From Iphione sp. A-MEVVRFRX5 (taxonomy: Eukaryota), in NCBI GenBank assembly GCA_976226885.1, contig OZ320319.1, positions 84,816,001-84,880,000 of the forward strand: a stretch of 64,000 bases of DNA, in the 5' to 3' direction. This document shows positions 49,078 to 63,126 of the stretch, one piece after another. The position numbers were made by a program, and so were the translations under genes. Every line of letters starts with the position of its first letter. The first letter of the stretch is position 1. The notes below the pieces were generated by a model. That model had not been told where the DNA came from. It worked only from the letters and a program-made list of their open reading frames with translations, and ran no database searches.

Positions 49078-49644
49078 GCAGACCGCAGCCCAGGTAGCAT
49101 CCATGTTCCACTCTTATCCATCTCCATGTTGCATGCAGACTGCAGCCTGGGTAGCATCCATGTTCCGCTCTTATCCATCTCCACGTTGCATGCAGACCGC
49201 GGCCTGGGTAGCATCCATATTCCGCTCTTATCCATCTCCATGTTGCATGCAGACTGCAGCCTGGGTGGCATCCATGTTCCACTCTTATCCATCTCCATGT
49301 TGCATGCAGACTGCAGCCTGGGTAGCATCCATGTTCCGCTCTTATCCATCTCCATTCTGCGTTCAAAGAGCAGCCTGGGTGGCATCCATATTCCGCTCTT
49401 ATCCATCTCCATGTTGCATGCAGACTGCAGCCTGGGTGGCATCCATATTCCGCTCTTATCCATCTCCATGTTGCATGCAGACTGCGGCCTGGGTAGCATC
49501 CATGTTCTGCTCTTATCCATCTCCATGTTGCATGCAGACTGCATCTCCATTCTGCATTCAAAGAGCAGCCTGGGTGGCATCCATATTCCGCTCTTATCCA
49601 TCTCCATGTTGTGTGCAGACCGCAGCCTGGGTAGCATCCATGTT
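49078..49644. repeat. 57-bp minisatellite, about 10 copies, about 190 bp downstream of the DIP2 stop codon
   Basis: GCAGACTGCAGCCTGGGTAGCATCCATGTTCCGCTCTTATCCATCTCCATGTTGCAT units. Confidence 0.95.
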
Positions 49645-49833: not shown

Positions 49834-50086
49834 TTACATGTTGTACGCCACGTAGATGGGGTCGAGCTGGTCGGCGAGGAAGCCGTCCCGCAGGTGCATG
49901 CGCTGCTTCTCGCCCCGCGAGTTGATGGGCACCACTCCGGGGTCGACCACCACAACCACACCAACGATCAAGTAGTGCTCTTCCAGCACCACGTTGGTCA
50001 CCAAGGGAACCAAGTCCAGAGCCTCGTTCTCATGTCCGTCTAGCTCCACCACCACGACCAGCAGATTTGTCCACGTGAAGACCGCA
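49834..50086 (-). CDS. DIP2: DIP2 terminal exon
   Basis: CAVFTWTNLLVVVVELDG..DPIYVAYNM*. Confidence 0.97.
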
Positions 50087-51981
50087 CTGGGTGGGAAGGA
50101 AAGAAAAAAAATACACCTTCAATCTTCCGCATACTACACTGTGGGGTAGGGGAGGGCAGATGGAAAAACAATTTTCCATCTCTTGGTAGTTTCTTGAATC
50201 AGCTATGATCGTTTTGGTATAGCTTATTTTTCTACTGATATTTCATTTTACACGCTATTGGAATAAAAAAAATGTGACTATTTCACCACTATCGGTCTTC
50301 AGGAATCTAGTGCTCCCCTAGACACAAGTTTACTATAAATACAAAAAAACTCTCTAAATTACACATCTATGAGGTAGAAAGGACACGGCTTAAAAAAAAA
50401 CCCTCTGACTCAAATTCACATTGTGTGTGTGTGTGTAGGTGTGAGTGTGAAGAACATGTCTGTATTTGAAGGACTGTAGAGTTCTAAACTGACTCATACT
50501 GAGGTATACACGTGTGAGTGTGTGGCACATGTTTGTACGTCTGTTAGTCTGGAGAAGGGAACTGATTACATATAGACCGTTAAGTCGACTTACCACTCGC
50601 AGATCTTGCGGTGGCATCGGAGGACACTGTTCTCTATGTCGATGGGGTGGTACCTCATACCTCGAAGCATCACCGTCTCGTCTAGGGCTCCCACGACGAA
50701 GATGGCATCATGGCGGCCTGCAAGCAAACAAGTCAACCCAATCTGTATCTACTTCTATAACATGGCATCATGGCGGCCTGCAAGCAAACCAGTCAACCCA
50801 ATCTGTGTCTACTTCTATAACATGTTCCTCGAGAGTAGGTGTACTCATGCTGCTTGGTACCCGTTTTTCAAAGACATGTCGTAAATGCTCGATTAACTTA
50901 GGTCCTGATTGATTTCTATCATTAGAGAACATAATATTTTGTCAAAAATAACAATAAACAAGAATGAAAGAGGGACAGGCAAAGACTGACAGAAAGAGAC
51001 AGCTCAACAGACTGAGAGACAGGAGTCAAGAAGGAGAGCTGGCAGCGGTGGGCAGAGACACTGATGTATCGAGTCATCTTTACAGACTTAACAGACTGAC
51101 GTCCAGGTAAACACTGACAGATATGTCGTCTCAAACAGAGTATTAAACAGAAAAACATACTTAAGAGACAATCACACCTAACGAAGAGATATGGCGATTG
51201 ATAGAGGGGCTGTTGTATTCGGCCTGCCTCACATAACTGACAGACAGACACTTAGACAGGCTAAGAGGACTTTGGTAAGTGGCTTACCTCCATCCGACTG
51301 TGTCATCTCAGTTCGTCAGATGAATCTCAGATACCCAGGATGGGCATAGATAGTATAGATATCTAACAGACAGACAGACAGACAGACAGACATAGAAAGA
51401 TAGACAGACAGACAGTAACAGTACTGTGTTGAGTAGCTTACCCTCATCTGACTGTGTCATCTCAGTCCATCGGATGAATCTCAGATACCCAGTATGGGCA
51501 TAGGTAGTGTGGACGTCTAACAGACAGACAGACAGACATACAGACAGAGACAGACAAACAGAGACAGAGAGACAAACAGCAGTGTGTTGGGTGGCTTACC
51601 TCCGATTGTGTCATCTCAGTCTGTCGGATGAATCCCAGACACCCAGTGTGGGCATAGGTAGTGTGGACGTCTAACAGACAGACAGACACACAGACAGACA
51701 GAGACAGACAAACAGTCAGACAGAGACAAAGAGACAAACAGTACTGTGTTGGATGGCTTACCTCCATCCGACTGCGTCATCTCAGTCCGTCGGATGAATC
51801 CCAGATACCCAGTGCGGGCGTAGGTAGTGTGGATGTCTAACAGACAGAGAGACAGACAGATTGAGAGACAGACAGACAAACAGCAGTGTGTTGGGTGGCT
51901 TACCTCCATCCGACTGCGTCATCTCAGTCTGTTAGATGAATCCCAGAAACCCAGTAAGGGCATAGGTAGTGTGAACGTTTA

Positions 51982-52029
<48 letters not shown>

Positions 52030-55000
52030 TACTGTGTTGGGTGGCTTACCTCCATCCGACTGCGTCATCTCAGTCCGTCGGATGAATCCCAGATACCCAG
52101 TGCGGGCGTAGGTAGTATGGACGTCTCCTGTGGCCAGTTGTGCCTCGAAATGGTCAGCGTGCAGAGAGTCGTCGCCATAGATGGTGTAGTAGCCACTGGC
52201 ATTCTGAGGACTGTTCACCCAGATCTGGCACAACATGAAGCAGAATGGGATGGATGAGTGGTTGACTAGGGAGACAGACGAATATATAGATGTATGGATG
52301 GATAGATTGGATAGATTGGATGGATAGATTGATGGATGGATGACTGGGTGGATGGATGGATGGATGGATGGATAGCATGATGAGAGACAGGCAGATGGAC
52401 ATACAAGTGGAATAATGGATCGATGGAAGAGTGGTGAAAGATGGCTGAACGGTGGGAAGGGATGTATGGATACATGGGTGGATGGACCCATAGAGGAGCA
52501 GATAGATGGAGCAACGATAAGGGGATACCTGAATGGATGGATGGACAGACAGAATGACAAATGGTTCCATGAAACAAGATAGAGGATGGACAGACAGGTG
52601 AACTGATGGGAAAATGGAAGCATAGAAGTAGGTGGAGTGACAGGGAATGAGACGAGAAGGGAAGGGATTGGTAAGAAGTGAGTGAGGTANNNNNNNNNNN
52701 NNNNNNNNNNNNNNNNNNNNNNNNNNNNNNNNNNNNNNNNNNNNNNNNNNNNNNNNNNNNNNNNNNNNNNNNNNNNNNNNNNNNNNNNNNNNNNNNNNNN
52801 NNNNNNNNNNNNNNNNNNNNNNNNNNNNNNNNNNNNNNNNNNNNNNNNNNNNNNNNNNNNNNNNNAGCGATAGAGAGAAGGGAAGATGGATAAAAGGATC
52901 AAAGAAGGGGGATACGGAGGGCGGAATAGGTTGAAGGCAGGCAACATGAGCCCAGCACTCGGGAGTAGAGGAGGTCTGTATGCAGAAAAGGAGGAAGAAT
53001 GAAGGAGGAAGGAGGAAAGTAGAGCAGTCGTGAGGAGCGTGGTGGTGGTGAGGCGGGGCCATCTTAATGTCTCGACATACACCAACATGATGACGCACGT
53101 ACCCAGCTATCAGGAAATCACCTTCAATCATTTTTTAAGAAGAAAAAATACAGTCACGTAGTACTATTCCAAACTCTCATTCCTGCAGCCCCTTCACTAA
53201 CCCAGTCAGATTACCCGGCTACAGAATTCAACCATATATAGTGTACAACCGTCAGCATTCTTACCAAACAGGTTCGGAACAACGATATGTGTATTCTCTC
53301 TCATGCACCTGCAACCTTTAGACGCGTAAAATACATTACTACTTTGTAATCTTCAAATGCCCTGTTTAGGCGCTACTTCCCTTTCACTTCCCTCCATGCA
53401 ACACTTTGTACACAAAGATGGTGGTAATCAAATCAAATAAAAAATATTTGACTATCCCACTCTGACATCATAAGTCAGCCATATTGACCTTGGCAGCCAT
53501 TTTGAATATTTTTGAATCTAATTAATTTTTGCACCAAACCTAACTTAATCAATGAGAACTGTTCAGTTACCACCTCCTGAAGAAGACCCGCATAAGGGGA
53601 CGAAATATTGAGGAAATGTAACAACCATGCAACATTAATAAAAACAACATTCCTACATATGGGGTTACCTGGTTTTGTTTGTCCTATATGTAAGCAAATC
53701 AAATGAATCAAAACCGACCATGGTTGAACCCCCCAAAGGGAGGTTCCGTAGAAAGGATGACTGATGACAGGAGTCGGTGCTCACTCACCTCACCCAGGTG
53801 CGAATCCGCACACTGGCCCTTCGTTTCAGGATTAGCTATCACTACATTGACACCAGGCAGAAGCTGAAATTCAAAGGAAGAGAGCCGTTATTACAACACT
53901 GCAACAGCCAACTCTCTGATATACACGAACAGAGAACAGATTGGTACGTTAGGCTTTGTGAAGACATCGTATGAAGACGTATCATCAGAAAACGCATATT
54001 ATAAAACACTGAATTTAACTTTTTAAATCGCTTGAAATGATACCTGAAAATAAACTATGGGAAATCGTACATGTAGGAAAACCCCATATTTTAAAACTCA
54101 CCTGATTTGAAACCGTGGTCTGGAAGTTATAAGGCAAACAAAATGACGACGGACGGTTGGACAGTGAAACAGCAGCCATCCTAGGTCCCCCCCTTATGAA
54201 GTAGTGGACAAGAAAGGTAAGGTCTCACAACATTTGCACATGATTATTTTCCACCTGACTGAAAACCCGGAGCTGGGGCAGCTACCTACCTTGCCGGACT
54301 CCATGACACAGAGGCTGTGGGGGCTTCCCTTCTCCACCAACGCCACGCGGTCGTTCCTCAGGGCCCGCATGTCGACATACACCTGCGACGGGTCAGGACT
54401 GGAGGCGCCCTGCAGATGAGAGGACAGCACAGCCAAACCAATCAGTACAGGTGCGATATCGGAGGTTATACATTATTACAGAAGTCGTTCCTGATCGTTG
54501 GAAGAATTATGCACGGAAAAGTAGAGGGACCTTATCTGTTACTGAACTGTCATTGTTCATGTCAAGTGACAGGGAGAGCTTGCACATCATGACCAAATAA
54601 ATTTCGCATTCCTTATTCCTGGGAGTCTCACAGAGAGTCAAGAAGGACAGCCCAGAAACAACTGTGGTGTCTCCCCAATTTAGAGACAAGTGATGTTACG
54701 TAGTTTGTAAACGGTGGGGAATAGCAGGGTGTTAGGCTGATTATCCACTGATCGGTAGTTTAGTGTTCCCTGTGTTAATGTAGTGGGGGCAGCTGCCATA
54801 GGTACAAAGCTCCTTCCTTTCATTACAGACTGTCAATACATGTATACTGTAGTGCGTTTAACGTTAACACGGCAAAGAAGTGACGGCTCAGTCAAGATTA
54901 CCGAACCACTCAATATCCCCCCCCAAAAAAAAAAAAAAACCCACCCATTTCTGAACAAATACCTCCTGATACAAACCGACTCTGTCCTACAGAAACAGCA

Positions 55001-55584: not shown

Positions 55585-58500
55585 GGAGAGCCGGACAGAG
55601 AGTGGGAGACAGAGCAAGATGGAGGACCATAGACAGAGGATAGAGACAGTGGGAAGGAGAGGGAGGACGACAGAATGAGATAACGAGAGAGGGAAAGATG
55701 AGAAAGGAGAAAGCGAGAGTGACAGAGACGGAGAGACAGACAGACAGGCAGATGAACAGAGTTATGCTAATGCAGAGACTTGTAAAGTTTTTTTAAAAGT
55801 TTGTAGACGTTAAATACTAAGGTGCCCGCACAGACATCTCTTCAACTTTCAACCTTGCAGTAAAAGTCAAACTTTCACCAATCTTCCTATCTCATTCATA
55901 TCTAAACTATTAACTCTACTTTAGGTTTTGAATGATGAATGCAAGTGCCACAAAACCTACCTTTATAGTGACTGACCATAGAGAGCCAAAGGCTGGGATT
56001 AACCTCGACCTCCCCGGGAGGGATCAACAGGGAATGGTGACCGGAGTAGATACTGTCAGGAAAAAACAACATAATCAGAATATCAAATAAATGTGTAAAA
56101 GATCAACCCCATACGAGGGGATCACTCATTTATTCATTCATTCAATACTCTAGAACACAAAGCATCAGTCACCTCACCATCAATCAACATGTGAAACTTA
56201 ACACTTACTAAATCAACACCAAGAAAACCAGTTTCGGCACTTACTTACTCAACACTCAACATGTGGAATGTAACACTCACTAAACCGCGCATGATGAGAG
56301 CCTGGTTTAGCACATACTCAACACTCAACATGTGAAACTCAACACTCACTAAATCAACAAGATGAAAGCCTGGTTCAGCACATATTCAATACTCAATATG
56401 TGAAACATTACACTCACTAAACCAGCGTGACGAGAGCCCGGTTCAGCACTTACTCACCTACTCAACACTCAATATGTGAAACTTTACACCCACTAAACCA
56501 GCATGACGAGAGCCCGGTTACACATACTCAACCCTCAATATGTGAAACTTTACACTCACTAAACCAGTGTAATGAGAGCCCGGTCAGCACTTACTCACCT
56601 ACTCAACACCCAAAGTGTGAAGCCCAGTCCCGTGTAGGGGTCGAGGCAGAGAGCCACATCACGTGACGGGTACAACTCACACTGGATCTTCATGGAGCGG
56701 CAGAGTGCTGCTGCTGCTGCATGCGACATCTGGTGGAAGAAACAAGAGCATAGGTGGGGTATTTGCATACAGAACTGCCTTAGGGAAATCATTAGATCTA
56801 AACTATTAGATCTTATTAGATCTATATTGTTGTGTACGGGTCTGTATAATGGTGTTGGTTGGATCACGTGTACAGCGCCATCTCAGTGTCAGCCCTCTGA
56901 GGGCTTATAGTGAATTAAAATTAAAAGTGTGTGCACTGTCGCTATCAATATCTTTGCTACTGGAATACAGGGCTGATAATGTAATTTATTAGGTCCAGTA
57001 TGGTTTATTATTTCATACATTTCATTAACATCTGTTGTAAATGATTCTTGTTCCTGGTCCTTGTACATCAAAGATGTATGTACCACCCCAGGTGAAATAA
57101 AGATTTTTTAAAAATACATATAAGTTATTAATGTTACATGGGCTCTTCAAAAGCCTTGATTTTATATGTATGGGTACGCTGACAATCCTTCTTCATTTCC
57201 AGTCAAGTGATTGATAATAATCTCTAGAAAGACGGACAAAATCCCTGAGAATGGAGCCCTAATGAGTTCTCCTCGTGACAGATCCGTTGCCTACCTTGAT
57301 GCCGGCCAGCATACCGGTGGTGGAGACGCTGAAGTCGAGGTAGCAGATCATCTCGGGGGTGGGGGCCCGGTACACCACGGCCAGCTTCCGCTTAGGAAGG
57401 TCGTCCGTGTCGAGCAACGTGGGCCAGTTCTTCATCTCCACGATAGAGGCCGCCTCCTGTAAGAAGAAAACGATGGAGGCTTTATCAGGGAAACGGAGGC
57501 AGCAGAGTACCCCACAAAAAAGAGAGCTTCTATTAAAAAAAAAACACTAGGCAGCACACTACCCAAAACAGTCTCTCTGTTAGAAAAGCTGGACCAATAG
57601 CTACTCAATACACTCACCACAATGTGAGGGGGAAAAAATCTTTACTATCTCCGTATTAAGAAAATACTGATGTATAAACGTAATGCACCAGGTACATGTA
57701 CCATGACAAAGCATATAAGCACAGAAGCAGAACACTGTATAACCATAAACCAAAGAACTTAAAAGTTTACAAATAAAAACAAAAAGTAAATCCACCAGGT
57801 TTATATGTATTCGTGTGGTTTTACAAACAGAAGTTTTCGCTAATGCATGGCAACACTTTGTGACAAAAACTAACGCTGGTCCCTCGAGAGTGGACCTTCA
57901 AGGTGCTGTACGATCATCCGAACACTGAAGTTTGTGATCTGAGGACAACAACGAGACGTACCTTGGATTTGAGCATCTTGATGATTCCCGAGTTGGAGAG
58001 GATGGCGCTCGACTTGCTGACCTCCACGATCATCTTGACTGTCGGCAAGGTGGTCGAGATGTTCTGCGGGTGGGGCGGTCGGATGGTAACGGGTACCACA
58101 CCTAGGTAAAGACGAGAGTGTGGATGAGCACGGTTTGAACTGAATTTATAAACTTCTGTATCCACGCTCTCATTGACTCATCATAGTGTATCATCAGGCT
58201 GAGAGACCGTTACAAGGCGTTTTTTTTTTTTGGGGGGGGGAGGGTGTAGTTTCCAACTCAGTTGGGAAATAATGCTGCATCATGTCGTAACGTCAGAATG
58301 ATACTTCACCTGTAGGTCTGTTTGTGAACAGTGCTGGACCAGTTGTTTGGACGTTCTTATGTGGTGAGGCGATAGGTCAACTGACGGGTCGCCAGCAGCT
58401 AAAATAACCCGGTACAGCACTTAAGGTCATCTTTTTCCCCCGACTTTGTTAAAGAAAAACAACAACAATACATTTTCATTGGTTGAAAGTCTACTCTGAC

Positions 58501-61500
58501 GTCTCCAATGGCAAAAACACGTTCCGTTGTAGCGAGGGTGGTGACGCTGTCTATCGCTGACGGTGGACTAAACGGGTACTGCAGACGTCACTTTTACTAA
58601 CTGTGACGTCATAATGAGAATATACCAATCAAATTGCTTTATTTCCAGACACTGTCTGAAAAACGGTCCAAATACACGTAGTAACGGTGTGGTTGTCACT
58701 TTGGCGATGGGTCTATTGGAAGATGTGGAAGGTAGCTTACCCACATAGAGGCAGCCGTAGAAGGCGCAGATGAGGTCGAGACCCGGCGGGTACACCAGTG
58801 CCACATGATCACCCGTGTTGAGCTTGCCCTTGTCCATGAGCAGCGCGCCGATGCGCTCGGCCCGCTTGTGCAGCTGCGAGCAGGACATGATCGCTTGCGG
58901 CTGACCCTGCAAGGGGGGAGCGAGTACAGGACATGTCTTTACCTACATCACCCAGGGCAGCAGTACCCAGGGCAGCTTCACCCTGGGCAGCAGCACCCAG
59001 GGCATCACCCAGGGCAGCAGCACTCAGGGCAGCAGCACCCAGGACAGCTTCACCCAGGGCAGCAGCACCCAGGGCAGCAGAGACCCAGGGCAGCAGCACC
59101 CAGGGCAGCAGCACCCAGGGCATGGTACCCGATGATGTAGGATTGAGACGGTTTGTTTTAATTCACAAATATCAGTATATTTATAATTATTACTTTGATT
59201 TCCAAGAATTTAGTGACTTCACTGGGAAAAGCATCACATAAATATACATGTATAACATGTACTTGTTATCTTGTTTAAGCATATATATAAGAATTTGACA
59301 AGGAACGGCATTAATATTTTTTCCCTTTATTTACGGTTATGTAATGATCATGAATAATTCGACTGTTTTTACTGAGACTGTTATACAATAAGCTGTTAAG
59401 CAGCTTTAATCCGATACTTGGACATTACAACTACAACGAATAGCTATACTAGAACTACGTATCTCTCTAGCTATCATTTTACTTAAGAATAAAAACCATA
59501 AAGAACCATAAAATCAGCAGGCCTTTTATGCTTATCAAATATTTCCAATCTGTTTGTTTTAAAAATAAGACAGGGATCAAATTATCAGCCTCCATGGTAT
59601 GATACTTTACAAAGTGTAACTCTAGAAAGTACTTGTAACTCATCATCTTTCGACTCTGAGATAGGTCCCACAAACGTTGATGATACGATGTAATCTTTAC
59701 GGACTGATCCCCTAGCAGCGGTGAGAAGAAGATCGCAACGATAAGTGTTTACAGCTACTCCATCATAGGAGAAACCTACACGATATGAAAACTCATCCAC
59801 ATAAGAAGCCGGCGCTGATCTTGACGGTTCTTTTAGGTCGGATAAGAAAGAAATAAAGTGTGACATACTATTTTGGTGCTCACCTTGGCGTTGATGAGGC
59901 TGAAGAGCACATGGTCTGGCGAAGTCTGTGCCCTCCAGCGGAGGATCTCCGACAAGAACTGGTACTGCAAGGTGGGAACAACGACAGGCAGTTAGTGCGA
60001 GCAGCTCACAGAGAGTGATGTGAAGAGGTCTGTCATCTTTCCCTGCTTTACTGAGAGGTTAACACCCCCTACTACGTGTATACTGACAAAGACAAAGGAA
60101 GGAGTCGCTTCCCTAAGGGCGATTTGTCTTTTTTTTAAATAGAAAACTTCAGTTCTAAATCGATATCTTCCAGTCCCTCATGATAAAACCGATCAGGCAT
60201 GTGGCACCAGTTACTCACAAAATGACAAGGCTATTCAGATTCCAAAGTTGGCTTAATATGATTCAGCCATGCTTTTCTTTGTCCAATATGAATTCTTTTT
60301 TTACTTTAAAGTTATCAATAGTCATTACTTAATAGCAGTAGCATTTTAGAACACAATGCATGAGGAGCGTAACACATTTGATATGAACTTTCTGAGCCAA
60401 TCAGTTTCATTTCATAACATATCTTAAAAAACACTTACTCAAGTTATCATTTCTGGTAGAAACTAACCTGATTACATACATATTCCCCCAAAAACAAACT
60501 AATGGACTTTATTTTTCCTCATCGATTTGCTGATGAACAAAACCCCAATGTCTTCCTTAAAGGTATGTGTGTATTGGAAAAAAAAAAGTTGGGACCTGTA
60601 CCTACTTTGACGAATGCACTCACACTTCTACTGAATATTTACGAATAACATATTCGAGACAAATACTACAAATGCCCTTTTTTCCTTACACTACCCATGA
60701 TGAATCTTACATCAAACTCAGGACTAAACTGATGTTGCTGTATAACATTCTCTTGAAACATGTATGAACGACTGGACTTGTCTAGTTTTAGATGTAGTTA
60801 CAAGCAAAGCATTGCGGACAAAGTTATGTATTTTTTTAGTAACAGCTTTACCCTAATACTTAAGATTTTTACAAGCTCCTGTTCTGGCATTATTTCATAC
60901 ATATGTACATGAAGAGATGATTTAAACTATCCCCTCGATTTGTACACAGGACCCATGCTGGTGGCGATCATTTGTTTTTACATGTTCCCTTTTGATAAAA
61001 CGGCTCTCCTTCCGTGTCACGGTGATTTTACCGAGACGTACAAATGTATTTACATGTCTTGCATTTGTCCAGGTGGAAATGACACGGTGCATAGAACCCT
61101 GCCATTAACGTAAATGCTACACAAGAATAGGAAGAAGAGGAAAAGTATAAGCCATCTACAGATCAGTTTTATAATATTCTAGAGAAGACCACTACAACAA
61201 CATGTACCACAACGAATAGGTATAGCATGCATATTACAGTAATCTGGCGTTGAAAAAACGGCAATATAGATCAGAAGAAAGCCACACACACATCAACACG
61301 TAAGCTAATCAATCAATTGAAAAAAAAACAAACCTAAATCATATCAACTGAACTCTGACTTTTTAAAGCTAAGACAAATCAAATAAATGAAACAAAACCG
61401 CCGATCTGGGATGGGGGGAGAAGGGAGGTCCCGCTGCGCCAGATTCTGCTGCTAGGTGGCGCTCTGCTCCAGCGACCTCCAGGCGGCATGCTTAGACTGA

Positions 61501-63126
61501 AACCGTTCCTTACAATGTGTACCTTGCGCGCCGCGTCGCTGTCGTCATCCAGGAGGCCGATGTCCCGTCCCTGTGCCCAGGCCAGGCGCGCGCCCTGCAC
61601 GATGTTGCCGACGTATACAGCCGACGGGCCGACATCTGCTGTAAAACCGCCCAAAGTGAATGCGTGTTTAAGTTATATTAGTATGCAGACATAAGGCCAG
61701 ATGCCTTGAACAATGTCAACATATACAGCCAATATGTTGACATCTGCTGTAAAACCGCCCAAAGTGAATGTGTGTTTAAGTTATATTAGTATGCAGACAT
61801 AAGGCCAGATGCCTTGAACATTGTCAACATATACAGCCAATATGTTGACATCTGCTGTAAAACCGCCCAAAGTGAATGCGTGTTTAAGTTATATTAGTAT
61901 GCAGACGTAAGGCCAGATGCCTTGAACATTGTCAACATATACAGCCAATATGTTGACATCTGCTGTAAAACCGCCCAAAGTGAATGCGTGTTTAAGTTAT
62001 ATTAGTATGCAGAAAATAGGCCAGATGCCCTGAACGCTGCCAGCATATACATGTACAGCCAATATGCTGACATCTGCTGTAACACTGTCCGAAGTGTATG
62101 TGTGTTTAATGTATATTAGTATGCAGACATTAGGCCGGATGCTCTGAACCCTGCCAACATATACAGCCAATATGTTGACATCTGCCGTAACACTGCCTAA
62201 ACTGAATGTATGTTTAAGTTACATTAGTATGCAGAAAATAGGTCAGATGCCCTGAACACTGCCAACATATACATTCAGGTCGAATTCTATTGTCAAACAG
62301 CCGAATGTAAATGTGTGTTCAAATTATAATTAGTACACAGGAACAAGGTCCATCAAAGTTATTCACATAGATCGACAGCCAACAGGATGACTTCTGCTAT
62401 AAAACGGCCGTAGTTAAACTCAAACGTTTAAGTCATATTAAAGCACAGAAACTCAAGTTTAATACACTGCGAGATGCAAATAACCATGTATACACCCAAC
62501 CAGCTGGCATGGGCTATATCAGAGCAGAGAAATAACATGCCCAAGTCATACTGGTACACACAAAAAATGAGACCCCGTACAACAATCCTGACAGCTCACA
62601 GGTCCACATCTGCTGGAGGAAAGCACTGGACATATGTATGCTTACGTTAGATGATATACATGTACATGTATACATATTCAGTCTCATAACAACGCGTGTC
62701 AAATTAAATTCCGCCGACTTCCCTACTTCCTTTATGTTGGAGGAACGCGAACGCATAAAAAGAAAACAGAATTTCTTTTGGCCTTTTTATCCATGGATAG
62801 TTTACTCGGTGTTGACTATTAAAGCTGGTCACTTCACTAGTTCTCTCTGACATTTTTATCTATGGACATAGTACTGAGTACTGCCTGTTTTAAAGCTGCC
62901 TACTTCACTGGCTGTTTTATCCCCCGTATTTTACCTCCATGGTTTGAGTCTAATATTGATTAGAGAAGTTCTGGTTGCAGGGGCACCCTTTACCTGGGTG
63001 GTGCTCGCGCGGCTTGGGCAGATTGGTGACGCAGGTGTGTGGACACATGAGCACGTTGGCCGGGTGAAGGCATCCCTCCAGGAACTTCTTCTTCGTCTCG
63101 TGCAGGTGGATGCCTCCCAGCGGTGT
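49834..63126 (-). CDS. DIP2: Disco-interacting protein 2 homolog, last 14 coding exons (670 aa: end of AMP-binding domain 1 and all of domain 2); 5' part lies beyond the window
   Basis: Exons 63126-62994, 61635-61523, 59964-59884, 58906-58741, 58101-57962, 57456-57295, 56729-56599, 56052-55961, 55391-55144, 54409-54290, 53863-53789, 52224-52050, 50717-50594 and 50086-49834. All GT-AG with consistent phases, 2013 nt in total. Hallmark peptides TPLGGIHL, CPHTCVTNLPKPR, YLDFSVSTTGMLAG, RTGYLGF and the C-terminus DQLDPIYVAYNM*. Confidence 0.97.
50594..50717 (-). CDS. DIP2: DIP2 exon
   Basis: RHDAIFVVGALDETVMLRGMRYHPIDIENSV. Confidence 0.95.
50702..50825. repeat. 60-bp tandem duplication spanning a DIP2 3' splice site
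   Basis: Two copies, 50702-50761 and 50762-50821. Second acceptor AG at 50779-50778. Confidence 0.95.
51280..52050 (-). repeat. Five tandem copies of the 3' 75 nt of a DIP2 exon plus its donor, separated by (TCTG)n tracts
   Basis: Copies at about 51978-51904, 51836-51762, 51670-51600, 51516-51442 and 51362-51288, each followed by GTAAGC. Confidence 0.95.
52050..52224 (-). CDS. DIP2: DIP2 exon
   Basis: IWVNSPQNASGYYTIYGDD..RTGYLGFIRRTEMTQSDG. Confidence 0.95.
52690..52865. other. Assembly gap (176 N) in purine-rich low-complexity sequence
   Basis: Run of N near (GGAT)n and GA-rich sequence. Confidence 1.
53789..53863 (-). CDS. DIP2: DIP2 exon
   Basis: LLPGVNVVIANPETKGQCADSHLGE. Confidence 0.95.
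54290..54409 (-). CDS. DIP2: DIP2 exon
   Basis: GASSPDPSQVYVDMRALRNDRV..MESGK. Confidence 0.95.
55144..55391 (-). CDS. DIP2: DIP2 exon
   Basis: VRDTFCSYGVMELC..FGCRVNVGICLQ. Confidence 0.95.
55499..55580. repeat. (AG)n microsatellite, about 41 units
   Basis: Direct inspection. Confidence 0.97.
55961..56052 (-). CDS. DIP2: DIP2 exon (absent from the ORF track)
   Basis: SIYSGHHSLLIPPGEVEVNPSLWLSMVSHYK, phase 2 to 1. Confidence 0.93.
56170..56620. repeat. 68-72 bp tandem array (about 6 copies) derived from a DIP2 exon 3' end plus 5' splice site
   Basis: Units contain TTCACA..TTGAGTGTTGAGT(AG|GTGAGTAA) on the minus strand, copying the exon end at 56620-56591. Confidence 0.85.
56599..56729 (-). 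CDS. DIP2: DIP2 exon
   Basis: MSHAAAAALCRSMKIQCELYPSR..GLGFTLWVLS. Confidence 0.95.
57295..57456 (-). CDS. DIP2: DIP2 exon
   Basis: EAASIVEMKNWPTLLDTDDLPKRK..YLDFSVSTTGMLAGIK. Confidence 0.95.
57962..58101 (-). CDS. DIP2: DIP2 exon
   Basis: VVPVTIRPPHPQNISTTLPTVKMIVEVSKS. Confidence 0.95.
58741..58906 (-). CDS. DIP2: DIP2 exon
   Basis: CSQLHKRAERI..GDHVALVYPPGLDLICAFYGCLYV. Confidence 0.95.
58949..59122. repeat. 15-bp minisatellite (CACCCAGGGCAGCAG), about 11-12 copies, intronic
   Basis: Direct inspection. Confidence 0.95.
59884..59964 (-). CDS. DIP2: DIP2 exon (absent from the ORF track)
   Basis: YQFLSEILRWRAQTSPDHVLFSLINAK. Confidence 0.95.
61449..61463 (+). promoter_or_regulatory. CTCF-like motif CTGCTAGGTGGCGCT in a DIP2 intron
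   Basis: Strong consensus match 60 bp from an exon. Motif match only. Confidence 0.4.
61523..61635 (-). CDS. DIP2: DIP2 exon
   Basis: DVGPSAVYVGNIVQGARLAWAQGRDIGLLDDDSDAARK. Confidence 0.95.
61585..62280. repeat. 108-bp tandem array (6 units) derived from a DIP2 3' splice site plus exon start
   Basis: CATCTGC(T/C)GTAA at 61633, 61741, 61849, 61957, 62071 and 62179. Confidence 0.95.
62994..63126 (-). CDS. DIP2: DIP2 exon (5'-most in the window)
   Basis: TPLGGIHLHETKKKFLEGCLHPANVLMCPHTCVTNLPKPREHHP. Confidence 0.95.

Follow-up and report, generated by a model that had tools for sequence, protein, structure and literature searches.

In the DIP2 gene of Iphione sp. A-MEVVRFRX5, the third exon from the end is followed within its intron by five further copies of its own 3' part, arranged in a tandem array. 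We read this array as a lineage-specific "mirage" minisatellite whose founding unit lies across the exon-intron border and whose copies would be silent or used at noise level, a reading to which we give a probability of about 0.75. The window, i.e. the whole stretch of DNA that was analysed, comprises 64,000 nucleotides (nt) of contig OZ320319.1 (positions 84,816,001 to 84,880,000 of the forward strand), and the array was seen in one assembly of this genome. The original prediction for the locus, made from the sequence letters, had called the array an exon birth in progress. That description was not supported: we found no coding constraint on the copies, no array in relatives and scarce branch points, and the structure is of a class that is usually silent (PMC3087553, PMC3902484, PMC1557585).

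Tandem Repeats Finder delimits a repeat with a period of 154 bp, 5.6 copies and a score of 994 at 51279-52126. The units stand head to tail and are of minisatellite size (~10-160 bp); the first starts 77 nt inside exon 52224-52050, whose last 77 nt it takes in, and crosses the exon-intron border, with the splice site copied along in the repeats. In each unit, 75 nt of exon lead into a GTAAGC donor, after which come about 25 intronic nt and a (TCTG)n tract with a GTT end, and the array as a whole consists of the authentic 3' end of the exon plus five copies, c1 to c5 (Table 1). Six GTAAGC donors are present, one per unit, and the five junctions read (TCTG)n-TT-A[G/A]-AC; in four of the five copies a TTAG acceptor stands behind the (TCTG)n tract. 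Donors, junctions and array coordinates all lie exactly where the original prediction had placed them. Compared in pairs, the units are 76-95% identical across 109-154 aligned bases, and a search of the 1.18-Gb genome found no occurrence of the unit outside the array; the array is therefore not a product of chance. A dispersed repeat or mobile element was considered as the identity of the unit and ruled out, the unit being unique in the genome. No Rfam families were found in the array region, and the only plus-strand reading frames there are repeat-derived.

The distal end of the array and its internal junctions tell how the units are put together. Past the c5 donor, the sequence can be aligned with the intronic portion of the other units; it contains only (TCTG)3 and finishes with ...CAGTT-A-TGTG. 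This stretch is the undisturbed start of the ancestral intron, so the array holds six full units and ends at ~51235; of the five repeats first proposed over 51280-52050, the five copies stand and the extent and unit count are corrected. At each junction GTT is intronic and GACG exonic, and the intervening A is common to both breakpoints (1-nt microhomology). The acceptor AG was therefore made by the duplication junction, only its G being purely exonic, and each unit is consequently a complete pseudo-exon. The pyrimidine tract supplied by (TCTG)n and the TTAG acceptors are as first described, except that the AG had been taken to be wholly exonic.

Exons and domains identify the host gene as DIP2, as had been proposed. 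Four full-length DIP2 proteins, used in tblastn searches, place 14 exons of the C-terminal half at 63126-49837, matching DIP2 throughout. Exon 52224-52050, the third from last in these searches, translates as IWVNS...ARTGYLGF...TQSDG (given as IWVNS...ARTGYLGFIRRTEMTQSDG). The exon after it, 50717-50594, matches PF23024 (DIP2-like AMP domain) with an E value of 6.7e-06 and 26.5 bits, slightly below the curated cut-off of 27 bits, and the C-terminal domain aligns with the fatty-acyl-AMP-ligase (FAAL)-type structures 7r7f and 3kxw (E ~4e-43). A C-terminal adenylate-forming (FAAL-like) domain with a DIP2-type AMP domain is thus present. The alignment lays ARTGYLGF over the RTGDLGF of the 7r7f and 3kxw enzymes, so the earlier equation of RTGYLGF with the A7 motif (RTGD) holds, with Tyr in place of Asp; in adenylate-forming enzymes the A7 Asp contacts the ribose of ATP. 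In the loop after ARTGYLGF, DIP2 has extra residues relative to the solved homologues, and exon 52224-52050 ends in that loop. DIP2 is single-copy in the 1.18-Gb genome, where no processed DIP2 pseudogenes were found that could have served as fossil transcripts.

Table 1. Coordinates in the window of the array, its copies, the flanking exons and the other tandem arrays of DIP2.
Feature	Position	Strand	Description
Authentic DIP2 exon	52050..52224	-	175 nt; ends in phase 1 (one base into the codon)
Whole tandem array ("mirage" minisatellite)	51235..52126	-	six units of ~132-166 bp
c1	51904..51978	-	75 nt; AA instead of AG; in-frame TAA
c2	51762..51836	-	75 nt; open; 2 differences from exon
c3	51600..51670	-	71 nt; 4-nt deletion; inclusion would shift the frame
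c4	51442..51516	-	75 nt; open; 10 changes including G>R, R>W and G>E
c5	51288..51362	-	75 nt; in-frame TGA; edge unit, most diverged
Host intron of the array	50718..52049	-	1332 nt
Next authentic exon	50594..50717	-	124 nt; A8/hinge region; PF23024 match
Second mirage, smaller, at the acceptor end of the host intron	50702..50824	-	60-bp unit x2, 96% identical
Junction-straddling array	56184-56621	-	68-bp units; last ~15 nt of exon 56729-56599 plus GTGAGT donor
Junction-straddling array	61631-62274	-	108-bp units; TTTTACAG acceptor plus ~30 nt of exon 61638-61523
Tandem array	49078-49624	-	57 bp x8.2, 90% matches; ~200-750 nt past the DIP2 stop codon at 49837

When the G carried over from the upstream exon is included in the reading, the copies form a graded series. 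The units are phase 1-1 symmetric, and c2 and c4 are both 75 nt long and open; a length divisible by three arises by chance in one case out of three. At the protein level c2 differs from the exon by a single residue (V to I), and it keeps six of the seven exon CpGs. Among the copies it would be the best candidate for inclusion. In c4, the G>R change falls inside YLGF. These translations match the original ones, in which c2 was open and nearly identical to the exon and c4 was open, and the in-frame TGA of c5 and the 71-nt, frameshifted c3 were seen as well. For c1 the AA in place of AG was recovered; its in-frame TAA was missing from the earlier account.

The order of events can be read from differences among the units. 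The closest pair is the exon unit and c2 (94.5%). A short intron motif alternates along the array, being CAGTACTG in the exon unit, c2 and c4 and CACTGCTG in c1 and c3, and common substitutions are nested, with position 17 changed in c1, c3, c4 and c5, positions 22 and 62 in c3, c4 and c5, and position 36 in c4 and c5. Taken together, the alternation and the nesting indicate a duplication of two units at a time (a dimer). The simplest history would be an older set of units followed by a recent duplication of the exon unit plus c1 into c2 plus c3, with the edge unit c5 staying outside any homogenisation. An amphioxus globin mirage shows the same behaviour, its edge unit being left out of homogenisation (PMC3087553).

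To describe the decay of the copies, we compared them with the exon unit as the reference and counted recurrent changes once, as distinct events. The five copies show 23 such substitution events, among them 20 transitions, 10 of which are at CpG; 10 of the 14 possible CpG transitions are realised in at least one copy, and the CpG count, 7 in the exon, is 6, 3, 3, 2 and 2 in the copies. Under the observed mutation spectrum 7.0 synonymous events would be expected, and there are nine (p = 0.37). For nonsense-creating changes the expectation is 1.04 and the count is one, with R>* at position 45, present in both c1 and c5, entered once. There is one 4-nt deletion among the copies (c3). Arithmetic from the substitution table gives c4 a chance of ~0.63 of staying open under its load of changes. 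Two open copies out of five are what neutral decay predicts, because c2 has only two changes and c4 has this ~0.63 chance. In summary, the copies appear to change like neutral DNA, with nothing to indicate coding constraint.

Comparison with relatives dates the array relative to its intron. Contigs of four other organisms contain the orthologous exon, 84-93% identical in protein, with the same exon end (...GGAG/GT) and the same following exon. The orthologous intron is complete in three of them (~172, 229 and 335 nt) and lacks the repeat; in the fourth, no repeat occurs in the 183 nt visible. Since the same intron is conserved but repeat-free in four relatives, the intron is old and the array lineage-specific. 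The marks of selection by which a cassette exon could be recognised were accordingly not found in the copies, neither purifying selection (9 of 23 events synonymous against 7.0 expected) nor conservation (absent in four relatives). Protein collections yielded no same-species match, the best match to the exon being 93% identical and from another organism, and the close protein matches are all single-exon reading frames from genomic contigs. No annotated isoform duplicating the segment turned up in a search with full-length fish DIP2 protein, which returned only vertebrate DIP2A.

These searches brought two side observations. In the closest relative, a metagenome contig with the 93% identical exon, this exon and the one before it form a single exon that reads continuously ...ANPETKGQCADSHLGE-IWVNS (compare 53863-53792 and 52224 in the window), so the ~1.57-kb intron 53791-52225 is absent there; three other relatives keep the equivalent intron, and this looks like an intron loss in the lineage of the closest relative. 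A hypothetical protein of Neotoma lepida scored above a perfect match because its draft annotation contains the region of the next exon twice, and was set aside as not relevant. In this DIP2 model (1475 aa) the A8-region exon occurs twice, at residues 1167-1230 and 1311-1374, and each copy carries a 12-residue read-through insert; the duplication is probably an assembly or annotation artefact.

We then asked what the copies offer the spliceosome, taking as the benchmark for pseudo-acceptors the gene's own authentic acceptors, 14 of which lie in the window. The donors of the copies equal the authentic GAG/GTAAGC, except for the GGG/GTAAGC context in c4. Pyrimidine content at -23..-4 is 0.70-0.80 for the pseudo-acceptors against 0.55-0.95 for the authentic ones. 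The TAG acceptor found in the copies occurs at one of the 14 authentic sites. The claim of phase-symmetric units with authentic-type donors is thus borne out, with identical GTAAGC donors and an AG behind 70-80% pyrimidine tracts. The weak point of the copies would be their branch-point context, as (TCTG)n provides pyrimidines but hardly any adenosines: in the interval 15-45 nt upstream, the pseudo-acceptors have 0-2 adenosines each, while the authentic acceptors that were compared, those of this intron and of exon 52224, have 7-10, and a consensus CTGAC branch motif occurs only in c3, at -46. The candidate introns between units measure 79-245 nt, a feasible length.

The consequences for the reading frame were derived from exon phases and per-exon translations only. 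The sequence features of a cassette exon (an AG with a pyrimidine tract, a GT and a frame-preserving length) are all present in c2 and c4, and inclusion of either would add 25 residues in frame. With c3 included, the next exon would read AAMMPSSSWEP* (stop 12 codons in), 88 nt before the last exon junction, and c5 would bring in an in-frame TGA in silico. A downstream donor used without an acceptor would run into a stop. In silico, c3 and c5 thus show the premature stop before the last exon junction that a poison exon has, and the suggestion that the broken copies could act as poison exons agrees with this phase arithmetic as a potential; the conservation of a poison exon is missing.

If exons were being born here, c2 and perhaps c4 would be used as a 75-nt cassette giving the second adenylation-like domain a repeated A7 strand, and c3 and c5 would act as poison exons lowering DIP2 output. 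The geometry favours this: the phase 1-1 symmetry with c2 and c4 open, donors the same as the authentic one, pseudo-acceptor tracts inside the authentic pyrimidine range, mini-introns of feasible length, and a loop where DIP2 already has extra residues compared with solved homologues at exactly the site of insertion. There is also a published model in which mirage units become exons (PMC3087553). However, the copies show no coding constraint, c4 carries radical changes in the motif, relatives are without the array, the branch points are poor, and the mirages reported so far are silent (PMC3087553, PMC3902484). We therefore consider exon birth unlikely, and it is to the same degree doubtful that some DIP2 mRNAs already contain c2 as a frame-preserving 75-nt cassette, or c3 or c5 as stop-carrying exons. 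The term is a fair name for a potential, chiefly that of c2. If c2 were spliced in, this would be a live case of a mirage unit turning into an exon, outside chordates and in a single-copy conserved gene, and it would show a step that the amphioxus globin model only postulated.

Two further explanations were weighed. The repeated strong donors and pseudo-exons could form a regulatory decoy array that binds U1 and splicing factors without being spliced and so tunes splicing rate or retention; a stretch of 770 nt holds five extra U1-complementary sites, and the distal acceptor of the intron is duplicated too. A function of this kind fits poorly with copies that decay like neutral DNA and with a lineage-specific array, which makes it quite improbable. 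The array or its copy number might instead stem from misassembly beside the N run at 52690-52865, a gap that does lie 640 bp from the end of exon 52224-52050, as originally remarked, and for the amphioxus draft genome one misassembled mirage has been reported (PMC3087553). But the units differ by 5-24%, with nested common substitutions, an indel and varied microsatellite lengths, and are therefore unlike collapsed or duplicated reads. An artefact is the least probable of the explanations considered and very hard to reconcile with these units, although the exact copy number may differ between haplotypes.

The mirage minisatellite reading accounts for the array as follows. The founding duplication would have linked a break in the intron (...GTT-A) with one in the exon (A-GACG...) through a single common base, and the TTAG acceptor before each copied exon piece would be an accident of that event. 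Later rounds and microsatellite growth would have led to six units, the last round probably being that from exon unit plus c1 to c2 plus c3. Selection would act only on the first unit, which is continuous with the remainder of the exon, and the five downstream copies would drift, mostly by CpG deamination. The authentic donor, being transcribed first, would join the authentic acceptor 1332 nt downstream, with the copies skipped or included at noise level only; inclusion of c3 or c5 would give premature-stop transcripts. DIP2 being single-copy and the array unique in the genome, the gene evidently tolerates it. Several points weigh on the other side. We infer the silence of the copies from the DNA. 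On paper, c2 fits well, with an authentic-type donor, near-perfect exon sequence and an AG behind 80% pyrimidine at the end of a 213-nt upstream intron. The one disabled acceptor (AA) is that of c1, nearest the exon, which could hint at past selection against acceptor use, the sites then being not wholly inert. The neutrality test, with 23 events, has low power, and the F7 precedent discussed below concerns repeated donors only, in mammals. As a graded series of pseudo-exons, from the near-perfect c2 to the decayed c5, the locus is of value as a test case: it could show how the spliceosome ignores, or fails to ignore, look-alike exons, and whether mirage units seed exons.

The array is one of five minisatellites in DIP2 (Table 1), four of which have a founding unit that lies across an exon border (p ~0.002 under random placement). 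This adds evidence that the generating process is not random with respect to splice junctions. In the repeat at 50702-50824, the acceptor of exon 50717-50594 and the opening 17 nt of that exon are present twice; the upstream acceptor copy (first exon base 50777), if used, would read RHDAML and then a stop. The copies in the 61631-62274 array show CpG-to-TpG/CpA decay relative to their exon, as in the 52126-51235 array, and in our overall account of the arrays in this gene the copies of all three other border-straddling arrays have the same CpG decay. The 49078-49624 array has no link to a splice junction and is probably in the 3' untranslated region. In a different part of the gene, no donor could be placed for the exon starting at 58906 (58745-58906 / 58101 in the window): the read-through of this exon (..GCLYVGK) and the frame before the next acceptor (..SRLYLGVVPV) both give a DIP2-aligning LY, and the region may contain another small junction duplication or a non-GT donor.

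The closest known structures are the amphioxus mirages in Adh3, troponin C, the globins BflGb6/9 and PGBD5, which were found by reverse transcription PCR (RT-PCR) to be spliced normally; the globin mirage units are 150-160 bp long and 81-100% identical (PMC3087553, PMC3902484). As in those genes, the first DIP2 unit stretches across the exon-intron border, splice sites are copied into the intron and edge units are the most diverged, and the 154-bp period of the DIP2 array is close to the 150-160 bp units of BflGb6. In contrast, the DIP2 units carry a long exonic part, whose 75 nt are divisible by three, and an acceptor arose at their duplication junction, so that every unit is a whole pseudo-exon and not just a copied splice site. 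The amphioxus evidence on splicing comes from RT-PCR, whereas the DIP2 array is known from genomic sequence. The globin paper holds that a unit could turn into an exon if cryptic signals were used (PMC3087553). Intron 7 of human F7 contains a 37-bp variable number tandem repeat whose first unit lies across the exon 7 border and whose pseudo-donors are identical; experiments showed that they can function yet stay silent, the choice falling on the most upstream donor (PMC1557585). Both genes thus present an authentic donor followed by identical pseudo-donors, but the F7 units are donor-only, without an acceptor or an exon-sized coding piece, and mammalian.

Rogers is said to have modelled exon or intron gain by internal tandem duplication. 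In this and the mirage-to-exon model (Figure 7 in PMC3087553), a duplicated segment with an AG and a GT can yield an exon, with the stretches between units becoming introns, and c2 has that geometry. The completed events in these models were inferred from gene structures, whereas the DIP2 copies represent a potential only. Known poison exons, which target transcripts to nonsense-mediated mRNA decay, are conserved and regulated. Inclusion of c3 (frameshift) or c5 (TGA) would likewise give premature stops, but in DIP2 the copies are hypothetical exons, young and not conserved. Judged by its structure, the array belongs to the known mirage class, within which its particular features are the 75-nt exonic part and the junction-made AG.

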